Shown here: piece by piece, positions 1-17,427 of the stretch
Layout of the letters: every line of letters begins with the position of its first letter
Numbering within the stretch: position 1 is the stretch's first letter
NCBI GenBank assembly: GCA_965112735.1
Contig: OZ218954.1
Coordinates: 806,001-870,000 of the forward strand
Direction: 5' to 3'
DNA from: Phaeosaccion multiseriatum
Lineage: Eukaryota; Protista; Ochrophyta, other classes
Length of the DNA stretch: 64,000 nucleotides
Notes under the pieces: generated by a model
Database searches by the model: none
Seen by the model: the letters and a program-made list of their open reading frames with translations, nothing else
What the model was told of the DNA's origin: nothing
Program-made: the position numbers and the translations under genes

Positions 1-236
1 ACTGAAACTGGAACTGAATCGATCGACAGACGATCAACTGGACTCGGTCGGGCTCAGACAGACGCAGAAGCTTGCACCACCACCAACGGGTACCCCAACA
101 TGGGGGACCCAACATGGGGGGCTTGGCGTGTGCTGCCTTGGACAAGGTCCATTGGAAAAGGTCCAGCACCCATAACGTGAACCCTGGGGACTCAGTCATG
201 GACTGCGAGGGACCGTAGGGCCGTTGGTGGTACGGC

Positions 237-3200
237 TTATTTGTGCACTGGAAGTCGCACTTCGTTTATTGCCCTCGCCAACGAGGTTCGCAGGCCCACG
301 CCCTCTTCGAACTTCACCCCGTTATGGAGCATTGGGCTCCACCATCTCGCTGCGATAGATGGATACACGGATAGACAGGCAGAGGAAGTAGTAAGACAAG
401 TATTATACATACCACACATATACATGTCTGTGGCGAATCGCTGCCATAAGCTGCCATCGACCCTTATGACCCACCTGGCACCTTGCGTCCGTGCTCGTGA
501 AGCATGTCCGTTCCTTTGTTGATGAGGCCCGCGTCTCTTTCAAGGCCCGCTGTGTACGCCACGGTCGTGAGCATCACCTGCAACGGTTGGTGGTACAACA
601 GCAGTAGCAGCAGCAGTTGGTGATACAGATAAGCCGCGGCAGCTGACGACGCAGCAGACGCAGTAGCAGCAACAGTTGGTTATACAGGCGTGACAGTCTC
701 ACTTCCTCCCTTCACTGACCTCAAGATTGTGGTAGTTGGCAGCAAACCCCATGTCCCCCCTCCAGGCGTCGGGATGCATGACCCAGGGGGTCCAGAACTT
801 GTACAGCAGATCTGTGTGGAGCACGTAGCCATCGCCTGCGCGGTCCTTGCCGGCCACCTGTTCAGTTTCAGTTTCAGTTTCAGTTTCAGTTCATTTGAGC
901 TTGTCTAGACCTTGCACCCGCCAGTGATCGATGATTGCCAATCAAGAGGTCGGGAGGGTCATACCCCCTCCCTCCCTCTCCTTCCTCTCTCCCTCTCCTC
1001 CCTCCCTCCCTCCCTCCCTCTCTCTCTCTCCCTCCCTCCCTCCCCTCCCTCTCTCCCTCCTCTCCCTCCCTCTCTTTCCCTCCCTCCCTTCCTGCCTCCC
1101 CTATTGAACGCACTCTTACCATCTTGCCGAGAGGGCCCAGGAAGGCGTTAAAAGGCCCCAGGAGGGACTTGACTGACATGGAGAAGCCTGGCCAGAACAC
1201 GGGAACGGGGTCGAGCCGGAACGCGTCGCCTATGTGCTTGTAGCTCTGGCACAAGAAGTGAATAGAAGGAGGGAGGAGGACAGGCCAGGGAGAAGCGGGG
1301 GTGGTGTTGGTGGTGGTTAGGGTTAAGTTACTGGGGAGGAAAAAACAGGAGGAAGAGGAGGAGGAGGAGAAGAAGAAGGAGAGCATGGAGAAGGAGAAGG
1401 AGCGAGGGGGGCGACGAGCAGGAGATGTAGCAGCAGAAGCAGCAGCTGTAGTAGTAGTAGTAGTAGTAGTAATAGCTTAGAAGTACTAAAAGTAGGAATA
1501 GGAGCAGGAGTAGTCCACCCCCACTTACCGTAGCAACGACGTTTAAAGGGGTAGGCACAATGTCCCCTCTCTGGTAGTAATGCCTGCATCGAGGAGAGAA
1601 GCAGGAGGAGGAGGAGGAGGAGGAGGAGGAGGAGGAGGAGGAGGAGGAGGGAGGAAGAGCAGGAGGAGGAGGGGGAGGAGGAGGAGGAGGAGGAGGAGGA
1701 GGAGGAGGAGGAGGAGGAGGAGGAGGAGGAGGAGGAGGAGGAGGAGGCGGCAGAAGGGGGGTCAAGAGAGACCAAGATGGGGCCACAGTAGTAGTGCTAG
1801 AAGAGCAGCAGTAGCAGCAGTTGGTGATACAGTAGAAGTCACAGACAATGACTGACTACTGCGTAATCTTCTAGCCTGGTGCCGAGCTACTACCCTAGCA
1901 CGGCACCATCACACACTTTACTCTACTCTGCCCTTATTACTCTACCCTTGACGTACTCTACCCTGCCCCATCACATACCCTATCCTACTCTACACACCTG
2001 AAGTCGACATTCAAGTCACTGTGGGGTGGTCACGTGATGATGACGAAGGTGCAGGTCAGTAAGGACCACCAGCCAGAGAGCACATGAGAGCGAAGAGTCA
2101 AGGACACATGGAGGGGCGAGTGAGTGAGTGGGTGCGTGAATGAGTATTGTGTGGTTGGATGGGTGCTTGAGTGAGTGAGTGTGTGGGTGGGTGAGGGAGA
2201 GAGGATCAGCGGCGGGAGCATGTCAGGTGCACGGTCCGCCTGGCCGTCCAAGAGCGAAGGCTGGGAGAAGAGAGACAGAGAGAAGAGCAGCAGCGTAGGG
2301 AGAGAATAGAGTTCCCCCCCTCACCTCAACCTCACTTTACTTCGCTCCACTCCACTCCACTCCACGCAACTCCACGCCCCCACCCTCCCCTCCCCACTCC
2401 ACCATTTTTACCTGAAAGCTGTCCCCAGGGCTTTGCTCCCTACCGTTGGGCTGCAAAATACCCTCGCGCGCACCTTCACCAGTCCTCCATCCGAGGCCTT
2501 GGCCCACTCCTTCACCTCCTTCTTCGATCCATCCTCCGACGCCGCTTGGTACTCCTTGTGCTTGTTGACCTGCAGCACCACGTCAAGGGCGGCGACGGTG
2601 GCCAGTGCGGATCCAAGACTGTGTCCACTCATAGTGATGGTGTCTACCTGACCCACACCCTTGCCCTTCCCCCTCCTGTTCCCCTTGCTACCATCAACCT
2701 CCAGATACTCCTTGACAACACCCCTAACGCAGGCCATCAGCGAAGTATCTAATTCAAAGTCCTCCACCACCTTTTTGTTCTGTGCGGGATGAACGACTTC
2801 CTTTAGGCCCGGGACGGCTTCGGATACCTGTGTGTGTAAGTCAATGAACCACGGAGTGTTTGCCATCCATTGGAAAGAGAACGATGGAAGGAAGGAAGGA
2901 GGGCAGTTAGAGAGGAGACAGGTCCGCAATCAATCAATGAATGTAGTGTGGTCACAGAAAGCAGGCTAAGTGACAGGATGTTGCCGACTACAAGGGCATC
3001 TGCCACTGCGTACCTCAGCCAGGAGGCTGCCGATATCGCCTGCCAGTGAGGACTCGGAGTCCTCGCCCATGCTGGAAAACTTATCGTCGTCCCCATCACG
3101 TGAGTAGAGCCCCAAGAACCCCCTGTGAGTGAGTGAGTGAGGGAGAGAGTTAGAGGAGGAGGAGGAGGAGGAGGAGGAGGAGGAGGAGGAGCAGCAGCAG

Positions 3201-5892
3201 CAGCCGAAGGAGGAGGGGATTCGGGGGGAGGTGAAGAGCAGGAGAAGGAGCAGGAGGAGGTTCAGGAGGAGGTTCAGGAGGAGGTTCAGGAGAAGAAGAA
3301 GAAGAAGAAGAAGAAGAAGAAGAAGAAGAAGAAGAAGAAGAAGAAGAAGAAGAAGAAGAAGAAGAAGAAGAAGAAGAAGAAGAAGAAAGAGAGGGGGAGG
3401 AGGAGGAGGAGGAGGAGGAGGAGGAGGAGGAGCCCTCACTCCCTCACAGCCTCCCTCCGTGCGTCTTGGTCTTCCCGTATGCTTCCCGTATGTACCTACC
3501 TGTGGATGCCAATGTTGTAACACTCCTTGCCCTTGTGCTCTGTCTTGGTCGGCAGGAGGGGCATGAGGAAGAGCCAGCGCATCCAGGACACCCACTTCTG
3601 CTCCCTCTCCTTGCGCTTGTGCCAGAGGACCTGTTTTGCGATCCACCCGGCACACATCAGACAGACAGACAGACAGATAGACAGACAGACAGAGCACAGC
3701 GTGCGTTAGTATGCATCAGCACACAGATACTACCGCCAAAAAAAAGGCGGCGTCCCAAGAGGCGGAGATAGAGGCATATGGGGGAGGGGGGGGGGGGGGA
3801 TTAGAGGCGTATGGGCTTACTCACCATGCCGGCCTTGGCGTCTTCTTGCCACTCCAGCGCGGTGAGCGTGCCTCTGAAGATGATGCTCAGGTCTCTTTTG
3901 CTCTCCGAGTAGCCCACAAAGCCGGCGAAGGTGGACTGTTCGTCGTCGGGATCGTCCGCATCGGCCAGCAGCGCAGTCGCGGTGGAGTAGAGCAGTTTGA
4001 CAACGACGAAGTCCTTAGGGAGGCTCTTGATATTTGCCTGGGGTTATGGATGGGGGGCGGAGGGGGAGGGGAGGGGCAGGGGGGGAGGGCGGGAAGAAGG
4101 GAGGGAGGGAGGGAAGAAGGGAGGGAGGGAGACACGGTGGGTGAGAGAGAGTCATGGGTGGAGGGAGAGAGAGGCAGACATGGAGGCCGGCCGGGAGAGA
4201 GAGAGGTGGGAGGAGTGTGTTCGGTTGCGCGAGAGGAAAGCAAGGCCAGGTAGTGCCATGTATGGGTGTTGGTCCTATTCATACACACACGCCTGTCGTC
4301 TTCCTTCTGTTCCTGTTTCCCCTTACTCCCCCCTCCGTACCTTGATGAACATCGTGAGCAGGTCCCTGATGCAAGGGCCCTCGTGCTCATGTTTCCCGTC
4401 ACCAAGGATACAGCACCCGTAGTTTCTGTTTGTCGCGAGCGGTGCAATGCACAAGGGGGAGGAGGAGGAGGGAGTGGAGGAGGAGGAGGAGGAGGAGGAG
4501 GAGGAGGAGGAGGAGGAGGAGGAGGAGGAGGAGGAGGGGGAGGAGGAGGAGGAGGAGGAGGAGGAGGAGGAGGAGGAGGAGGAGGAGGAGGAGGAGGAGG
4601 AGCAGGAGGAGGAGGACGGGGAGGACGGGGAGGGGGAAGAGAGAGAAGGACGACTCGTGAGAGAAGAAGCCGCCACACGAGGCATCACAGAGATGGAGCG
4701 AGAGGAGGTAGACAGGCATACGGGCAGGCAGGCAGGAACACAGACAAGCCTGTCTCTCCCTCTCGCTCTCTCTCGCCCCCCCTCCTCTCTTCCCTCCCTC
4801 TCTCTCTCCCTTCCCCTCTTGTCCTCCTACTCACTTGTTGGTCGGGTCAGTAACGAAGAGATCGTACACGGCTTGCACCATTTCTCCATACATGACGTCT
4901 TCCCTTATACCATCCGCACCCGTCTTTAGGCCTAGCAAGCGTGCCTTGACCTTCTTCGCCTGGTGTGGCCACGTCATTCGCATACGGAGGTACACTCTGA
5001 AGAGAGGGAGGGAGGGAGGGAGGGAGAAAGGGGAGGGTGAGAGAGGGAGAGCGTGAGAGGGAGGGAGAGACGCACAGAGCGAGAGAGAGGGCAAGCAAAG
5101 CCCCCCCCACCCCCACTGCTCCTTACCTACCACACTCTACCTCCTCCCACTCCTTCCTTCCTTCCTTCCCAGCGGTTACGGGCCACTATTCCTCCTCCTC
5201 CTGCTCCTCCTCCTCAGCTCAGCTCCTCTACAGGAGTCCGTCACTCTGGCAACCCCTCAACGCCCCTCAGAAGTGAATAAGCCCCCTCCCCGCCCGCACT
5301 CACTCGATATACTTGTAGCTGGCGAAGACGCCCAGCACCACCAAGGTACCCACAATGGCCTGCTTGGCTCGTCCCTCGGGGAGCTTGTCCACGACTCCAA
5401 AGAACGATTTCACCGCGCCGTACACTGGACCAAGGAGCGTGTCTTTCAAGCCATCTGCAAAGTCTCCCAGGCCCATGTCGCTGCGTAGGTAGGACGAGAG
5501 CAACGGACGAACAGAGGAAGAAGACGTACTCAGCAAGAGGGTGGAGAGAAGGGGAGGCAGGGGTAGGCGAAGGCCGGGGTGGATTCTTCCCTTGTCCCTT
5601 GTCTCCTTTCAGCGCATATCGCTACCACCTCTTTGCCCAGCCCCAGCAGATAGCATCCGAGGGGTTTGCTCCCTTTGTCGCCTGACCTCGGTTGGCTTAC
5701 TAGTAAATCCTTCCCTTAGAAAGGTCACGGAACATCGTCGTCGACAAAGCTTTTCATTTCATATCCGCACCTGAGGTCTTGTGTACCTGAATCGAAGAAG
5801 GCCGCAGTGCCAGCTGGGGCATTGGGCAGCAGCACACAGAGCAAGAGGACGGCTTTGCTCACGCGCCAACCACCACGCAGCCGCGCAAGCAT
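237..5892 (-). CDS. Class-3 lipase, plant phospholipase A1 (DAD1/PLA1)-like, paralog A; multi-exon
   Basis: The spliced protein has YGEMVQAVYDLF..D...NYGCC, IFRGTLTALEW, IHRGFLGLYS, the nucleophile elbow ITMSGHSLGSALAT (~2610-2640), GDIVP (Asp, ~1560), YKHIG, YHNLE (His, ~725) and RDAGLINK. This is the motif order of plant PLA1-I/II. ATG at 5892 with a signal peptide (VLLLCVLLPNAPAGTAAFF); stop at 237-239; GT-AG introns between exons. Confidence 0.88.
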
Positions 5893-6109
5893 CCTGAAAG
5901 AAGGGGACTGATATGTGTGTGCCCAGCACGCAAGGTTAAAACCAGGGGGGAGCGAAAATGAAAATTTTCTCCCCCCCGAAAGTCCGCCACTTGAATGTGT
6001 GTGTGCGACTCGTCGGAAGCGGATCGGGAAGTTCGATGTTCCGTGAGGTGATCCTGCAACTTCACGCCAGTTACATGTAGTGATAAGAGGCTCACGTGTG
6101 TGTGTGTGA

Positions 6110-6220
<111 letters not shown>

Positions 6221-6459
6221 GATGTGTGTGTGTGTGTGTGTGTTGATGTGTGTGTGTGTGTGGGTGTGAGGCTGCCGCAAGTTCTTGGCAATTGCGGACA
6301 AAAGGTGTTTATGTGAAGTGCATGATGAATAGGAAGAGTTGACCCCTGCTGTGACGTGCTACCGAAATCCGGGCAGCATACAACTGGCGAAGTGTGGTGT
6401 GTTGGCAGTTGGAGCTGCCAAGCCCCCATCCACTGCCGCCTCTCCCGCCACCTCTACCG

Positions 6460-7095: not shown

Positions 7096-7271
7096 GAGGG
7101 ATGTGGCAGTGGAGTGATGGCACTGGATGGGGATCTCCGAAGGGTCCGCCCCGCCAAGCGCATGGATAGACGTACGGCACTCACGTCAGCCTCGCGAGCG
7201 GCGTGGTCCTAGTCCGCTACCTCGTCGTTCTCGCAGTAGGCGCTCTCCTCATTCCCACCATCATCTTCCGT

Positions 7272-7380
<109 letters not shown>

Positions 7381-7760
7381 CCCTCCTCCTCCTCCTCCTC
7401 CTCCTCCTCCTCCTCCTCCTCCTCCCTTCCGCCCCCCGCCCTTCTTTGCCCCCCCCGCAGACTTCTCGGGCTCCGGGCTTCTGGGCCATAGCCCCCTCCA
7501 GGCTTCGGGCTTCTGGCCGCAGGCCAGCGCGGGTTTCTGCGCCGCAGGTTAGCGGTCTGGGCTTCAGGCTTCTCAGGGGGGCTCAGGAGGGCGGGGGGGG
7601 GGAGAGATATCAGCCCTGGGCTTCTTGCTTTCGGCCGCAGGCCGCCTCAGGCTTCTGCTTATCGGGGGGCCAGAGAAGTCCTGCGGGGAGCCGACCTTCT
7701 CCTCTTTCCTCTCTTCCTCCACCACCTCTCTTCCCCTTCGCCCTGTTTCTCTCTCACGCA

Positions 7761-7812
<52 letters not shown>

Positions 7813-7837
7813 GGACACACACACACACACACACATC

Positions 7838-7891
<54 letters not shown>

Positions 7892-8851
7892 CACACATAC
7901 ACACACACCCCACAAAGCACACACACAAAGGACACACAGGCAGGCACGTCCGCACACAGCAAGCAAGCGCAAGAAGTTGCGCGTAACGCATGCCATGGAC
8001 GAGGCCGTCATCGGAGTGGAGGTGCTCATGTGTCGTGTCGGCGGGGCTGGTAGGGGCGGTGGCCAGGCCAAAGGGGCAACAGGCAGGGCATCCACAACAA
8101 TGACGCCAAGTAGGCCTACATCGCAGGAGAAGGGTGAGCGTCGGCAGGAGAAGCAGCTGTGGAGGCAGTAGTAGTAGCACTAGTAGTGGTAGAAGTATAG
8201 TAGTAGTAGCACACACACGCGCACGCATACACGCCCCTACGAACGCACGCACGCACACACGCACACACACCGGTACAAACACACGCGCACGCACACGCAC
8301 ACGCACACACACGCACACGCACACACACACGCACACACACAAACACAAACACGTACACACACACGAACACACTTACAATCATAACAGGATTGCTGGAACA
8401 GCCAACCCTGCTCCGCTCCGCTCTGCTGTGCTGCCCTTCCACCCCACACATCCACTGCCATTCAACCCGCAAGATGATGCTGCCCCAGGGGGAAACCCGA
8501 GACTCCCCCCATTGCAATTGTAGTACTCAAATTAATAAGAATAAACGAACGCACTGGTAGGACGCTCCGTGGTGTCTTGCTTCCAACACGACGGCTCAAT
8601 CTACTTTTCTCGTAGCCTACTGGTGTATGAATATGAAAGGGAGCGAAGCAAAGCAACACCCCACAACCCCATTAAAAGAAGAAAAACAACCCAACTCAGC
8701 CAGGAAAGAAGCAAGCAAGGGATGCCACCCCATTCCAGGCAACAACACTATCACACTACAGTACAGGCCCCGCCAGCCACTCGCCGCGGAGCAGAGGCAA
8801 CCAAGGAAAGAAAAGACCGGCTTCCCCCTTCTTCACCCTCGTCCATGCATG

Positions 8852-11575
8852 TTAAATGTTGATGCTCGCGGCCACCTTGCTGGGCAGCAGGACCTCGTAC
8901 GGAATGGTGACGCCCTCGTTCCGCTTGTTGATGATGAGCTCCACCGCGTCCAAGTTGCGTTTCAAGTTGTTGTACACCGTGGGGTACTGCGAACGGAACT
9001 CCACCCACTCAATCGGATTGTTCGAGTTGGGGATGCGCTCCCCAATCTGGTCCAAGGTGGGGTTCTCAGGCGAGGCCAAGAGCCAAGACACCAGTCCCTG
9101 GAAGATGGCGAGTCCAAAACCTCGCGGATCGGTGCCACCGGGCACAGCAGCGAGGATATCAGCCGTGGTGATGTCTTCCTCGCCGTCGGGAACGCCCCCG
9201 AAGATGGAAGCAGGGCGGTTGATTGGAGTCGACGTGTACGGGTATTGCACATAGTTGAGGGCCGAGTGCTGAGCAGAGGCTGTCCACACGATGGTGGTGA
9301 GCACCTTGACGAGCACTTCCTTCTCCACAATACTCTCCGGAAAGCCCGAAATGTCCGCCTTGGTACACGCCTCGGTGCACCACTCTTGAATAATCTTGTC
9401 TGCCTTCACGTCGGCGTCGGACTCGTAGAGCTCATCAACCATGTCCGAGCAGTAGCTCCACAAGGTATCCCAAATGAGGTATCCGTCATCACGATAGCGG
9501 TACCCGTTAAACTCGTCACTGCGCCCAAAGCCGCGCTTCGCCAGCTCGTCAGGCAGCCCCGATGTCATGAAATCGTAGTCGACAAAGGCCTCCTGGACCA
9601 TTTGCACCCCCTGAGCGGTGCCGGTGGCAAAGGTTTGATCCGTAATGGCGCCTTCATCCGCCACGAGAGTTTGACGCGCCAGGTAGTTGATGCCGATGTT
9701 GTCGCGAAAGTGAGGCTTGAGGAAGCCCCCGAGGGGGTGCTTGTTCTTCTCCAGCACGTTGTGGCACGCAACAGCCATCGGCTCGACGGCCAAGTGCGTA
9801 AAGCCCAGATGGTTGGTGAACTGATGGACTTGATTGTCGGCACAGTTGACATGTAGCTTGGCGAAGAGGTACTTGTTGGGTGGGCTCGAGTCCGGCGCGT
9901 ACACAGGCGCATCCTCCCTCTCCGGCTCCAAGAGAATCCCCAGGACGGAGAGCTCCTCGGCACCAGTGCGGTAGATCAACATGGTTGGAGCATAGAGTGT
10001 GACGCCGTTGATGCTCCGATCCAAATGGCGGAGAGCCTTGTAGTCCAAGACGTAGAGACGCTTCTCCTCCACGAGCTTGTCCACATCCGAGCCATCCTTC
10101 GCCTTGAGCGCGAGGAGCTTGGCGGGAAGACTGGCCTTGTCCTCGCTCTCTACCACTCGGACATGGATGGGATTGAGGCCAGCAAAGATTTGGCGGAGGA
10201 ACTCCTCGTCTTGGGCCCAAAGGTTGTCGTACAGAATGCTCGGTTTCGGAATGTATCCTCCTTTGCCTTTCTCTGAGAAGTAGGCGGCATAGCGCTCGTA
10301 GGTGTTGGCCACCGGGATGAGCCGACGTTGCAGATCGAACTGCGACTCAATGTACTCGAAGATAGCGTTGAAGATAAGCCCAACCTTGTGAGGAGGAAGC
10401 ACCTCCGAGCGGGGCAGACCCTTGACGTTGGCGGGCAGGCCTGCCTTGCGAGAGTACTCCCAAACGGGCAGCTCCGGTGCCGAGGCGAACTTGAGGATGT
10501 CAAACGCACGACCCTTAAGGAGATTGACGGCTCCCTCCAGCTTTTTGAGCGACTGCACCTCCTGCTGGGCCTTGGACAGTGGCAAGACGTCACCTGTTCG
10601 CAAGGTCATCTCCAGGTCCACAGTCACTGTAGCGCCCACCTTGCTGCCTTCGAGGTCCAGTGTCATGGTGACGGGCTCGCCGCTGGTGAGGCCCTCCTTC
10701 TGAAGGTCTACAAGGGCGTTGCCGAGCCACCTGTCGATGCCCATCTCACGCTCGAACACTGTGATGCGGACCTTGCTCTCCTCCTTCAGCAAGTCGAAGC
10801 AAGCGGGCGCGGCGCGAAAGGAAGGAGAGCTTCCAAACTCCTTGGACTTGACGGTTACCGGCGGCGCTCCGTCCACGGCAATGTTGGCGTAGGATGTAAC
10901 CAAGAGGTTGGACGAGAGATTCTCCCCACTGACCACCGTCACGTCCAGCGTGCCCAGGGAAGGATTGATCGCACTCTGTAAGTGATCAATCCCGTCCTGG
11001 TAGCCTTTCGCTTGGGAGCCAACAAGCATGTTGACGGCGGAGGATTGGGTCCAGGAGCGCCACAAAACGTTTGTTGAGTCACCGTTGGCAGTGAGAGAAA
11101 CCACAGTCTGGATAGCCTCAATGGGGAGAGGAAGGCCTTCCAGCGAGACGAGGTCGTAGCGCAGCACATGATTGCTGGGGTCACGGGCCACCAACACTTC
11201 CTTGGTGGTCACGCCGGCGCGGTCCTTGAAGCCGAAAGTGCGGGTGTCGCCAATGTCGTTGCCGGTAGACTCATAGTCGGTGTAGATGGGCCACCAGTCG
11301 TTTAGTCCCTCGAAGTTGGAGAGGAGTCCCCACACCTTGTCGATGGGTGCATCGACCGTCCCAGTAGCAATGGCGGTGGCGGTACCATCGGGAATGGTTT
11401 CTGCTGCTGGTGCTAGTGTTGGTGGTGCTGGTGGTGTTGAGCTTCGCGCGGATGCCAGCGAGGATGCCCGCGCAATCGACTGGCGACCGACAGGGGAGTG
11501 GGCGAAGGGCGCGATGGGCGCGAACCCATCAGCAGTCGCGGCCGCGATGGCCAAGACCACCAGCTGCAGCCTCAT
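8852..11575 (-). CDS. LOX: Lipoxygenase with N-terminal SRPBCC (START/Bet v1/polyketide-cyclase-like) and C2 domains; predicted plastid-targeted; single coding exon, 907 aa
   Basis: Iron-ligand motifs HQFTNHLGFTHLAVEP, HPLGGFLKPHF and SAQHSALNYVQY, plus C-terminal SINI. Also WAQDEEFLRQIFAGLNP and YRYRDDGYLIW. The N-terminus MRLQLVVLAIAAATADG-FAP fits an ASAFAP presequence. SRPBCC-like segment ~11385-10965 (VDAPIDKVWGLL..F..L..WWP...G.IGDTR); C2-like segment ~10958-10607 (GTLDVTVVSGENL...VRITVFE....DRWLG). Confidence 0.95.
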   Translation of the reverse strand: MRLQLVVLAIAAATADGFAPIAPFAHSPVGRQSIARASSLASARSSTPPAPPTLAPAAETIPDGTATAIATGTVDAPIDKVWGLLSNFEGLNDWWPIYTDYESTGNDIGDTRTFGFKDRAGVTTKEVLVARDPSNHVLRYDLVSLEGLPLPIEAIQTVVSLTANGDSTNVLWRSWTQSSAVNMLVGSQAKGYQDGIDHLQSAINPSLGTLDVTVVSGENLSSNLLVTSYANIAVDGAPPVTVKSKEFGSSPSFRAAPACFDLLKEESKVRITVFEREMGIDRWLGNALVDLQKEGLTSGEPVTMTLDLEGSKVGATVTVDLEMTLRTGDVLPLSKAQQEVQSLKKLEGAVNLLKGRAFDILKFASAPELPVWEYSRKAGLPANVKGLPRSEVLPPHKVGLIFNAIFEYIESQFDLQRRLIPVANTYERYAAYFSEKGKGGYIPKPSILYDNLWAQDEEFLRQIFAGLNPIHVRVVESEDKASLPAKLLALKAKDGSDVDKLVEEKRLYVLDYKALRHLDRSINGVTLYAPTMLIYRTGAEELSVLGILLEPEREDAPVYAPDSSPPNKYLFAKLHVNCADNQVHQFTNHLGFTHLAVEPMAVACHNVLEKNKHPLGGFLKPHFRDNIGINYLARQTLVADEGAITDQTFATGTAQGVQMVQEAFVDYDFMTSGLPDELAKRGFGRSDEFNGYRYRDDGYLIWDTLWSYCSDMVDELYESDADVKADKIIQEWCTEACTKADISGFPESIVEKEVLVKVLTTIVWTASAQHSALNYVQYPYTSTPINRPASIFGGVPDGEEDITTADILAAVPGGTDPRGFGLAIFQGLVSWLLASPENPTLDQIGERIPNSNNPIEWVEFRSQYPTVYNNLKRNLDAVELIINKRNEGVTIPYEVLLPSKVAASINI

Positions 11576-13304
11576 ATCGGACCTGTGACAGAAAACATGA
11601 AAACATTCCGTGGAAGCAAGAAGAACATGATGGGTGGGCGCGATGAGCGAGGCAGGAGCGCGATAGGGGCGGTGGACAAGCAATGCAGCACGCAGATGGC
11701 TGTGGGAAGCAAAAGGGCCACACCCAGTTGAAGCTGCCCATGTTAGTAGACAAGCCCAACCCTTGCACGGAACCCACTCCCAACCCAGCGACTCCAGGGC
11801 CGACGACTCCTCGTCCCTCACCTCTACTTGCTTGGCTGCTTTCAAGTTCTTGGGCTGTTGCTTGGCTGCTTCCTGTTCCCTCTGTCTGCTGCGATGGCCC
11901 GCCCCTCGGTCTCTCAGCAGCAACCCTTGCTTTCCTGTACGCCAGAAAGGGAGGAGTAGAGAAAATGATCAGGATTTGTTCCTTGTCGCTCTGCCCAATT
12001 CAACAGTGCTGACAAACGGCCAGCCGGACCTGCCGCACAATCCCGTGAGAGAAGGGCTCTGCTTCATGCCGTACCTGGTTGGTGTCTTCACTCTTCCAAT
12101 GGCCTGCTGCAAACACCACTTGCAAATGACTTCTGCACTTTGGCTTGTGTGTCTCCCAGCAGCACCTTGGCTTCAACCCAGGTGTACTAGCAGCGAGGGT
12201 CATGGGATCCTGGCTCCGAAAAGAAAATGGCGCCAAAAGTTGTTTTCCTAGGGTTATTCAAAAATGGGGGGGTACAATTGTATTCAAATTTTTGAAGGCT
12301 GACCTGAAGCTCGATGCCCCGCTGGTGCTGCTGCGGCCTTGCTCAATCCAGTTGTGACAGTTGCAGCAGCAGCAGCAGCAGCCAATGGTAAGACTCTCGA
12401 GGGGGGTCGAGGGTGCCGGAGGTAGACAGCGAAGACAGGAGTACACGAGAAGATGTGAGAGAGCCTGCTTGAGCATGTGCTTTGCATATGCTCTTCGTCT
12501 TATCAGATGGCACAGCAGGACCAGCCCTCCTCTCGCGGATTGGATGGCCATGCTGCTGTTGGGGCTGGGGGTGGGCGGAGGGGACGGAAGGAGGGAGGGA
12601 GGGGGGGAGGGAGGGGGGGTGGGAGGGAGGGAGGGAGGGAGGGAGGGAGGGAGGGAGGGAGGGAGGGAGGGAGGGAGGGAGGGAGGGAGGGAGGGAGGGA
12701 GGGAGGGAGGGAGGGAGGGAGGGAGGGAGGGAGGGAGTGCCGAGGGAGGGAGGGAGGGAGGGAGGGAGGGAGGGAGGGAGGGTGGGAGGGTGGGAGGGGG
12801 CGGAGGGAGGGAGGGAGGGAGGGAGGGAGGGAAGGAGGGAAGGAGGAGGGAGGGAGAGAGGGAGAGAGGGAGGGAGGGAGGGAGGGAAGGAGGGCGAGAG
12901 AGAGGGAGGGAAGGAGGGAGGGGGAGGGAGGGAGGGAAGGAGGGAGGGAAGGAGGGAGGGAGGGAGGGAGGGAGGGAACGTAGGCGGGAGAGGTGGTGGG
13001 AGAGGCGGCAGTGGACGGGGGCTTGGCATCCTCCAAGTGCCAACACATGATGGAAACGTGCGCAACCAAGCACCCTGTGAACCTCCTGTATGACCAACTG
13101 GCACCCACAAGGAACAACTTCGCATGAATTTTCTTTTTTTCTAACTTCCAGCATGCTGCCCGACGAGTCCGAGTCGTAAACATGAACAAGGGTGTTGCAA
13201 ATTTTCATGGCTTTCCTCGCTTTTCAAGTGCCGCTTTGTACCCTTCGGAAGGTCAGAGCATGCACGCAAAGGAACCACCCCCGCCCCCCCACTCCTGAGA
13301 AAGG

Positions 13305-16300: not shown

Positions 16301-17427
16301 TCCATCGTTCTTTATCCAATGGATGGCACTCCGTGATTTATTGACTTACACACACAGGTATCCGAAGGCGTCCCGGGGCTCAAGAAAGTCGCTCAACCCG
16401 CACAGAACAAGAAGGTGGTGGAGAGCGTTGAGTTAGACACTTCGCTGATGGCCTCCGTTAGGGGTGTTCTCAAGGAGTATCTGGAGGTTGATGGTAGAAA
16501 GGATAACAAGGGTGTGGGTAAGGTAGACACCATCACTGTGAGTGGACACAGTCTAGGATCCGCACTGGCCACCGTCGCCGCCCTTGACGTGGTGCTGCAG
16601 GTCAACAAGCACAAGGAGTACCAAGCGGCGTCGGAGGATGGATCGAAGAAGGAGGTGAAGGAGTGGGCCAAGGCCTCGGATGGAGGACTGGTGAAGGTGC
16701 GCGGGAGGGTATTTTGCAGCCCAACAGCAGGGAGCAAGTCCCTGGGGACAGCTTTCAGGTAAAAATGGTGGAGTGGGGGTGGTGGAATGAAGTGACCCTT
16801 TTCTCTCTCTCTGCTCCTAGGCTTGGCTCTTGACCTGCTAGGCGGACCCGTGCCCTGGCATGCCCCCTGCCGCTGATCGTCTCCCGCCCTCACTCACTCA
16901 TCCAGTCACCCACTCACCCACTCACCCACCCACACACTCACTCACTCAAGCACCCATCCAACCACACAAGACTCATTCACGCACCCACTCACTCACTCGC
17001 CCCTCCATGTGTCCTTGACTCTTCGCTCTCATGTGCTCTCTGGCTGGTGGTCCTTGCTGACCTGCACCTTCGTCATCATCACGTGACCACCCCACAGTGA
17101 CTTGAATGTCGACTTCAGGTGTGTAGAGTAGGATATGTGTTAGCGTAGAGTAGTTATAGCAGAGTATGTGATGGTAACGCTCTCGGGTAGTAGCTCCCGC
17201 ACCAGCCCCCCCACAGTAGTCAGTCATTTCCTGTGACTTCTACTCTATCACCAACTGCTGCTCTTCTAGCCCCTACCACTGTGGCTCACCATTTTTCGCT
17301 TGACTGCCTTCTCCACCTTCTGCCCCACCTCCTCCGCCTCCTCTCCTCGACACAGACATTATTATGAGAGAGGGGATATCGTGCCTACCCCTTTAAACCT
17401 CGTGGCTCCGGTAAGTGGGGCAGACTT

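Follow-up and report, generated by a model that had tools for sequence, protein, structure and literature searches.

The window analysed here, a stretch of 64,000 nucleotides from contig OZ218954.1 of Phaeosaccion multiseriatum, carries on its minus strand (8852..11575) a gene for a lipoxygenase (LOX) whose catalytic domain is preceded by a presequence, an SRPBCC domain and a C2-fold beta sandwich. We consider the product to be a nuclear-encoded, probably plastid-directed member of a bacterial-type SRPBCC-C2-LOX family, and we give this reading, together with the mechanism proposed below, a probability of about 0.65. Marine bacteria, red algae and amphioxus are already known to have the three-domain layout, and the window protein is an added algal member that reveals no new kind of enzyme architecture. 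A preliminary description of this DNA was right in mentioning SRPBCC-bearing LOXs from red algae (PMC4319731, PMC11507377). The novelty that it implied for the fusion was overstated, as the architecture is inherited and widespread: in a scan of 44 sequences (43 relatives and the window protein), the SRPBCC profile PF10604 was found in 36 and the C2 profile PF00168 in 21. New here are a presequence in which a signal peptide is joined to the motif 'FAP', an intronless coding sequence behind a spliced intron of the 5′ untranslated region (5′UTR), a site between two inverted class-3 lipase paralogs and a phylogenetic place next to Shewanella and marine myxobacteria and away from the red-algal enzymes. 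For complex-plastid algae, including haptophytes and diatoms, we found no published account of the SRPBCC-C2-LOX architecture.

Domain architecture and iron site

The coding sequence is complete and intronless, with 907 codons plus a stop (ATG at 11575, stop codon at 8852-8854); it has no in-frame stop and is the longest open reading frame (ORF) by far within the first 20 kb of the window. Its C-terminal part, aa 368-907 (8855..10474, minus strand), is the LOX catalytic domain, as indicated by Pfam, structural superposition and alignments. PF00305 (Lipoxygenase) matches aa 443-799 with an E-value of 3.8e-58 and 198 bits (cutoff 23.6). When the whole AlphaFold2 (AF2) model of the protein, which was built from the 44-sequence family alignment (mean pLDDT 86.3, pTM 0.68), was compared with solved structures using VIA, it superposed on Cyanothece LOX2 (5meg) with Z 41.8 and an rmsd of 2.0 over 502 residues, and the part aligned was aa 368-907 only. 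More than 30 LOX entries scored above Z 39, and those at Z 40-42 included Cyanothece LOX2, coral 8R-LOX, human 12-LOX, Pseudomonas LOX and 5-LOX.

All five iron ligands are present. In the alignment with human 5-LOX, H589 (9809-9811) and H594 (9794-9796) correspond to the ligand histidines of the H-x4-H motif, H770 (9266-9268) and N774 (9254-9256) to SAQH-x3-N, and I907 (8855-8857) to the C-terminal isoleucine; the ligand histidine positions are invariant, or conserved in 43 of the 44 family members. The same alignment pairs A633 of I-N-Y-L-A-R-Q (9677-9679) with the alanine of I-N-T-K-A-R in 5-LOX. This is the Coffa position, which we take to be Ala542 of soybean LOX-1 and Ala410 of 5-LOX, and alanine occupies it in 42 of the 44 members. 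The non-haem-iron site is, thus, complete and, following the Ala/Gly rule, the S-type Coffa residue predicts S-hydroperoxides. The iron ligands also line up with those published for the red-algal enzyme PhLOX2 (H585, H590, H774, N778 and I899; PMC4319731). Additionally, N581, F649 and Q777 line up with N577, F644 and Q781 of PhLOX2 and, through PhLOX2 and a constant spacing from the iron ligands, match Asn575, Phe642 and Gln777 of PhLOX. The equivalent of Phe826 of PhLOX is possibly F825.

Upstream of the catalytic domain, aa 66-203 (10967..11380, minus strand) form an SRPBCC domain of the helix-grip, Polyketide_cyc2 type. PF10604 matches aa 70-202 (E 1.6e-14, 54.8 bits, cutoff 27.4) and, in the AF2 model, aa 68-203 show the order beta-alpha-alpha-beta6-long helix with a pLDDT of about 90. 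The only position of this domain conserved in at least 90% of the 44 aligned sequences is T168. A PDB sequence search with the domain alone gave a best E of 0.13, to uncharacterised ligand-binding SRPBCC proteins and PYL receptors, and such searches retrieved neither a solved SRPBCC-LOX structure nor a closely related solved SRPBCC structure; a feature search of the ESM Atlas gave no usable match. The structure of an Enhygromyxa LOX (8x8f) was considered as a solved SRPBCC-LOX and rejected, as it matches the LOX part only (aa 451-780) and apparently represents a different paralog (E 1.9e-39, compared with 6.9e-145 for the SRPBCC-bearing Enhygromyxa protein, P0032).

The following segment, aa 204-330 (10586..10966, minus strand), is assigned to the C2 fold by profile, model and fold search. 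Its profile match is marginal: in a scan of the full-length protein with an E limit of 1, PF00168 is not reported, and it reaches 22.7 bits with the isolated domain (cutoff 22) and 21.0 bits with a longer piece, while the orthologous segments of relatives match with E down to 2e-19. The AF2 model shows an eight-strand sandwich at aa 208-325, which has a pLDDT of 91.5 when modelled alone. The top 50 matches of this isolated sandwich in a Foldseek search of the PDB are all C2 domains, and none is a PLAT domain. They include Itch, CEP120, extended synaptotagmin (E-Syt), cPLA2 and dysferlin, with E-values of 7.5e-8 and weaker and TM scores of 0.54-0.71 (0.61-0.71 for single-domain C2 entries). PLAT (PF01477) gave no match at E up to 10 on N-terminal pieces. 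Judging from the model, the sandwich is a genuine C2 fold and not a PLAT domain. In C2 domains of the synaptotagmin type, Ca2+ is bound by five acidic residues located in loops 1 and 3. In the window protein, these loops are degenerate: a threonine replaces the aspartate of the D-P-Y-V motif in loop 1, and loop 3 reads E-x-E...D, one aspartate being kept, where relatives have D-x-N...D. Because the canonical loop aspartates are mostly lost, Ca2+ dependence is not predicted for this domain. A linker, mostly a single long helix in the AF2 model (aa 335-365), joins the sandwich to the catalytic domain (10475..10585, minus strand).

The parsing of the protein into presequence, SRPBCC, C2 and compact LOX domains, which the preliminary description had proposed, is therefore borne out by Pfam, AF2 and Foldseek. 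The same holds for its claim that a C2 sandwich stands in place of PLAT, and the alignments to 5-LOX and PhLOX2 agree with it on the five iron ligands, as does the 5-LOX alignment on the alanine at the Coffa site.

Family, presequence and gene structure

A word search that used words from the first 500 residues of the full-length protein returned two relatives; when it was repeated with aa 430-907 and complemented with an exhaustive search, a large family was found (2408 relatives in the exhaustive representative search). For many of the best relatives, a single alignment runs from near aa 67 as far as the C-terminus. For instance, the Shewanella cluster representative P0031 aligns in one stretch (aa 67-844 against 15-785) with 41% identity and E 9.6e-158, and the cluster P0031/P0181 includes BAJ02412 (SvLOX), from S. 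violacea DSS12; the PhLOX2 cluster (P0063/P0197) matches with E 1.4e-73. Bacterial members come from Shewanella violacea DSS12 and its Shewanella relatives and from myxobacteria (Enhygromyxa salina, Sandaracinaceae/Polyangiales), and one record, from Shewanella psychrophila, carries the name 'Lipoxygenase/Polyketide cyclase/C2 domain'. The cyanobacterial members are from Coleofasciculus, Trichocoleus and Prochloraceae. Among eukaryotes, the family includes lipoxygenase 2 of Pyropia haitanensis, proteins from Branchiostoma and lamprey, and proteins from the transcriptomes of Chromulina nebulosa and Anisonema acinus.

The nearest relatives are two sequences, one taken from a metagenome and the other from JGI data. 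They are 59-62% identical over full-length alignments and have the three domains alike. One of them, P0001 (61% identical by BLASTP, 62% in the alignment), is encoded at 263-2971 of a metagenome contig of 3538 nt (L001) in one uninterrupted frame. This contig has 53% G+C with AT-richer non-coding flanks, the N-terminus of P0001 is a textbook signal peptide followed by phenylalanine, and the source is presumably another complex-plastid alga. Identities for the SRPBCC, C2 and LOX domains are 62, 50 and 71% to P0001 and 35, 32 and 43% to P0031, with 22% for the presequence. Across all relatives, SRPBCC identity declines in step with LOX identity; therefore, the fusion has been inherited as a unit under purifying selection.

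In a quick maximum-likelihood tree, supported by SH-aLRT values only and without bootstraps, the window protein groups with P0001 and P0016 (99) and then with the Anisonema protein (100), within a clade (99) that also contains Enhygromyxa, Sandaracinaceae/Polyangiales and Shewanella. Other subclades hold the proteins of red algae, chordates and chrysophytes. This pattern fits a transfer between marine bacteria and eukaryotes, in either direction, of the kind that others have proposed for Pyropia and amphioxus. Domain composition varies within the family. The C2 domain is lineage-variable, as P0030 (Anisonema), P0032 (Enhygromyxa), P0006 and P0047 run from SRPBCC straight into the linker, and cyanobacterial and amphioxus members have about 300 extra N-terminal residues, which correspond in the literature to additional SRPBCC copies.

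The presequence (aa 1-65; 11381..11575, minus strand) is the least conserved part of the protein, with an identity to the closest relatives of 22-24% compared with 60-71% in the folded domains. It begins with a signal-peptide-like hydrophobic core, which is followed by A-D-G-F-A-P ('FAP' at aa 18-20) and by a stretch rich in alanine, serine, arginine and proline. In the AF2 model, aa 1-57 have a pLDDT below 50, with a hydrophobic N-terminal helix at aa 2-17. A signal peptide followed by phenylalanine (the 'ASAFAP' motif) is characteristic of bipartite presequences that direct proteins into complex plastids of red origin. A similar arrangement is observed in the relatives P0001 (..AHA|FSL) and P0037 (..SQA|FVP), while the bacterial and red-algal members have no comparable extension. 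Because of this arrangement and of its absence from those members, we infer, by inspection of the motif, that the window LOX is plastid-targeted.

The gene model was examined with contigs of public sequencing runs on 8500-12250. Contigs of one of these runs, X4, cover the LOX region from 8597 to 11580 and then jump from 11580/11582 to 11820/11822. The joint 11580->11820 (cut +2) has CT..AC ends on the plus strand, which are GT..AG on the minus strand, and delimits a spliceosomal intron of 239 nt in the 5′UTR (11583..11821, minus strand; GTGAGG...CACAG), located 7 nt upstream of the ATG at 11575. X4 depth is present at 11776-11901, zero at 11650-11775 and absent past 11902. The first 5′UTR exon (11822..11905, minus strand, its upstream end undefined) contains no ATG, so 11575, the first ATG after the splice junction, is taken as the start codon. 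At the other end, an X4 contig that starts at 8597 and reads through the stop codon defines a 3′UTR of at least 8597..8851 (minus strand). X4 is a run from another study, a small one with several species, and the label 'DNA?' given to it by the tool is a guess; considering this kind of study and its exon-only cover, X4 is more likely a transcriptome. Three other runs, from one sample, give a genomic-DNA-like cover of the LOX stretch, including the sequence upstream of the ATG (e.g., 11330-12250). Another joint, 11436->11774 in run X1 (side 21, TT..AC ends), was set aside as unreliable. With its spliced 5′UTR intron and eukaryotic flanks, the LOX is a bona fide eukaryotic gene.

The contigs of all four runs depart from the window sequence at 11400-11430 and also at 8848 (X2 at 8848 only). 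At 11430, the alternative contigs enter a run of CTG CTG ATG GTG (ATG)n that, read on the coding strand, would add a His-rich insert to the presequence, and at 8848, just beyond the stop codon, they continue into a 3′ flank unrelated to the window. The LOX coding region also shows many single-base variants at about half depth. These departures and variants indicate a further copy, either a second allele or a paralog of very recent origin, that differs in its presequence and 3′ flank.

The LOX occupies the middle of a segmental duplication with inverted arms, in which about 180-5960 mirrors 18590-13260 with exon-sized blocks that are 75-100% identical at the protein level and follow one another in mirrored order. 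One exon of a class-3 lipase lies in each arm (left arm, 2411-2929, minus strand; right arm, 16415-16759, plus strand; Lipase_3, E ~1e-6), and both lipase genes, which are cut into many short exons in contrast to the LOX coding region, are transcribed away from the LOX. The intergenic sides of the LOX (7100-8500 and 12260-13200) are full of simple repeats. Among them are (CAC)n/(CAT)n and (CA)n/(TG)n microsatellites, as well as a long, imperfect repeat of the CCTCCCTCC type whose translation gives repeated PPSL. The intronless LOX is set apart by these tracts from the two lipase-containing arms of the duplication. An ORF at the inner end of the left arm (5728-6429, minus strand) has a sub-threshold match to ZIP zinc transporters (21.9 bits, cutoff 35.1).

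Possible roles of the N-terminal module

Diverse observations on homologs are available to interpret the N-terminal module. It was reported in 2015 that SRPBCC stands in place of PLAT in LOXs from Pyropia/Porphyra and in that of Shewanella violacea, and that SRPBCC/START domains bind lipids (PMC4319731). In 2024, the N-terminus of PhLOX was modelled as two perpendicular beta barrels with three helices leading to the LOX domain. Deletion of the first barrel increased the C8 volatiles of the hydroperoxide lyase (HPL) type, while deletion of the whole N-terminus abolished volatiles and depressed or delayed hydroperoxide formation; the deletions named PhLOX-C0 and PhLOX-C1 altered both volatile output and LOX kinetics (PMC11507377). 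In the same work, the allene oxide synthase (AOS) and HPL behaviour of PhLOX was mapped by mutagenesis to the LOX-pocket residues Asn575, Phe642, Gln777 and Phe826, and not to the SRPBCC domain. For SvLOX, the activities characterised on arachidonate are those of a LOX, a hydroperoxidase and an HPL-type enzyme, and the products are 12-HpETE/12-HETE, 9,12-diHpETE and 2,4-decadienal (PMC11507377). Finally, the LOXs of amphioxus and lamprey, of bacterial-like origin, combine a C2-like domain with one to five SRPBCC (PYR/PYL/RCAR-like) domains, which in amphioxus have been proposed to act as receptor modules (bioRxiv 10.1101/2022.05.18.492404). The general idea of the preliminary description, that the N-terminal module affects catalysis, thus finds support in a homolog, and the comparison of full-length with SRPBCC-deleted enzyme has already been done there, as the PhLOX truncations are published (PMC11507377). 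The specific roles that it offered for SRPBCC, namely a channelling of fatty acid from the lipases, a sensing of product or a conversion of the hydroperoxide, are hypothetical.

In the mechanism that we propose, the window LOX would be imported into the plastid and its presequence removed. The C2 sandwich would replace PLAT as the element that docks to membranes or lipid surfaces, probably without need of Ca2+, since most of its loop aspartates are missing. The LOX domain would dioxygenate free C18-C22 polyunsaturated fatty acids to S-hydroperoxides, and a further conversion within its pocket, through hydroperoxidase or lyase-type side reactions, may occur as in SvLOX and PhLOX. The SRPBCC domain would be a non-catalytic module for the binding of hydrophobic ligands that, with the linker helices, may shape how substrate and oxygen reach the pocket, thereby tuning rate and product spectrum. 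Such a role matches the change of products observed after N-terminal truncation of PhLOX. Free fatty acid could plausibly be supplied by the flanking class-3 lipase paralogs.

A different possibility is that SRPBCC and C2 serve for localisation only, replacing PLAT in attaching the enzyme to thylakoid or envelope lipid or to lipid droplets, with catalysis otherwise unaffected. Like PLAT, C2 is a beta sandwich that targets membranes, and the true C2 fold of the window protein would agree with such a role, as would the lipid binding of SRPBCC/START domains (PMC4319731); moreover, the SRPBCC-LOXs that lack C2 (e.g., P0030, P0032 and P0006) suggest that either domain can dock. However, truncation of PhLOX shifted kinetics and products in solution and with free fatty acids (PMC11507377), so the N-terminal module acts on catalysis without membranes, and the canonical Ca2+ aspartates are mostly gone from the C2 loops of the window protein (Thr in loop 1; Glu-x-Glu and one Asp in loop 3). 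We thus regard a purely localising function as unlikely. The chances are poorer still for a more ambitious proposal, in which SRPBCC is an active partner that takes lipase-released fatty acid to the LOX channel or acts on the hydroperoxide, and lipase, LOX and lipase form a co-regulated and co-inherited cluster around a bacterial-derived enzyme, a plastid oxylipin module. It is also very improbable, slightly more so than that cluster, that SRPBCC constitutes a second catalytic site, a cyclase, dehydratase or lyase that converts the LOX hydroperoxide in the manner of polyketide cyclases or of the coral AOS-LOX. The Pfam family matched is named for polyketide cyclases/dehydrases, the domain is conserved nearly as well as the LOX, and removal of the full N-terminus of PhLOX abolished the HPL-type volatiles (PMC11507377). 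Nevertheless, deletion of the first PhLOX barrel raised these volatiles instead of abolishing them, point mutations in the LOX pocket (Asn575, Phe642, Gln777 and Phe826) altered the AOS/HPL behaviour, and PhLOX2 has the domain without HPL activity. In addition, as T168 is its only position conserved at 90% or more in the 44 sequences, the domain has no obvious catalytic dyad or triad, and its nearest solved relatives, which are PYL receptors and uncharacterised SRPBCC proteins that bind ligands, match with E no better than 0.13.

It could also be argued that the frame is not a working gene at all, and derives from bacterial contamination, an assembly chimera or a recent unexpressed transfer, as its coding sequence is intronless next to lipases split into many short exons and its closest named relatives are marine myxobacteria and Shewanella. 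This is hardly credible, since X4 contigs with exon-only cover skip a GT..AG intron in the 5′UTR, the eukaryotic presequence of the signal-peptide type is absent in bacterial homologs and the presequence-bearing form occurs in two further eukaryote-like sequences with 59-62% identity. Furthermore, the G+C content equals that of the surroundings, genomic contigs from three runs of one sample span the gene and its flank (e.g., 11330-12250), and none of the catalytic residues is missing from the frame, which is intact throughout its 907 codons. Bacterial contamination in particular was rejected on the basis of the intron, the presequence, the G+C content and the spanning genomic contigs.

Some points weigh against the plastid-directed, SRPBCC-tuned LOX that we favour. 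If cleavage of the signal peptide follows A-T-A, phenylalanine would be at position +3 instead of +1. As X4 bears the label 'DNA?', expression and splicing of the gene are no more than probable. Substrate, position, stereochemistry and lyase or AOS activity are extrapolated by analogy from relatives that are 33-41% identical. PhLOX2 has the same N-terminus and no HPL activity (PMC11507377), and thus SRPBCC alone does not predict the product type. Because the whole N-terminus was termed 'SRPBCC', the PhLOX deletions cannot separate the effects of SRPBCC from those of C2, and the loss of activity after full deletion could simply reflect misfolding.

Algal oxylipins, such as volatile aldehydes, ketols and hydroxy acids, mediate responses to wounds, grazers and stress, and few of the enzymes that produce them are known. 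The window gene extends the family of multifunctional LOXs of the SvLOX/PhLOX type to an apparent complex-plastid alga and offers some practical assets: a version with a plastid-type presequence, neighbouring lipases that are candidates to release the substrate and an intronless coding sequence that could be expressed directly. It would be a good second system in which to separate the roles of SRPBCC and C2 that were lumped together in the PhLOX truncations.

Comparison with known lipoxygenases

The characterised enzyme most similar in design is SvLOX (BAJ02412), which shares with the window protein the order SRPBCC-C2-linker-LOX, the iron ligands, the Coffa alanine, the pocket residues N, F and Q and the subclade. 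SvLOX is bacterial and has no presequence, and its C2 domain retains more of the canonical acidic loop residues; by contrast, the window protein is eukaryotic and has a predicted targeting presequence of 65 aa, and its gene has an intron in the 5′UTR. PhLOX (AFQ59981) and PhLOX2 (AGN54275, P0197) are also similar, with SRPBCC, a second beta barrel, three linker helices and a C-terminal LOX domain of about 480-540 aa in a total of about 900 aa, and their iron ligands align exactly. The sandwich at aa 208-325 and the helix at aa 335-365 of the window protein agree with the two perpendicular barrels and three helices modelled for PhLOX (PMC11507377), although the papers on red algae leave the C2 fold unnamed and apply the term 'SRPBCC' to the whole N-terminus. 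The red-algal enzymes differ in being 29-33% identical, in belonging to another subclade and in having no targeting presequence. The LOXs of amphioxus and lamprey (P0042, P0052, P0053 and P0044) combine C2-like and SRPBCC domains as well and align over the whole length; however, they come from intron-bearing animal genes, their SRPBCC domain is often repeated several times (1100-1180 aa), their identity to the window protein is 30-38%, and they belong to another subclade.

More distant systems share the catalytic part. The PLAT-LOXs, such as soybean LOX-1 and human 5-LOX, have the same catalytic fold (Z 33-40), set of iron ligands and S-type Coffa alanine, whereas the window protein has no PLAT, its LOX domain is preceded by the C2 sandwich and an additional SRPBCC domain, and its catalytic domain is of the compact bacterial type, with Cyanothece mini-LOX as the best match. 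The coral fusion of allene oxide synthase and 8R-LOX (3dy5) also has an extra N-terminal domain, and the LOX parts superpose with Z 38. There, however, the LOX is joined to a catalase-like haem enzyme whose substrate is the hydroperoxide, while the partner in the window protein is a small, haem-free helix-grip domain; the haem catalase-related N-terminus is absent from the window protein, of which only the LOX part aligns to 3dy5. Finally, the prokaryote-like LOXs of brown algae (Ectocarpus and Saccharina; PMC5712309) are similar in their stramenopile origin, in their bacterial affinity and in that some are predicted to be plastid-targeted. An identity of the window gene with these LOXs was considered and rejected, as they are single-domain proteins of about 650-750 aa encoded by genes with 15-20 introns (PMC5712309), in contrast to the three domains and the intronless coding region described here.

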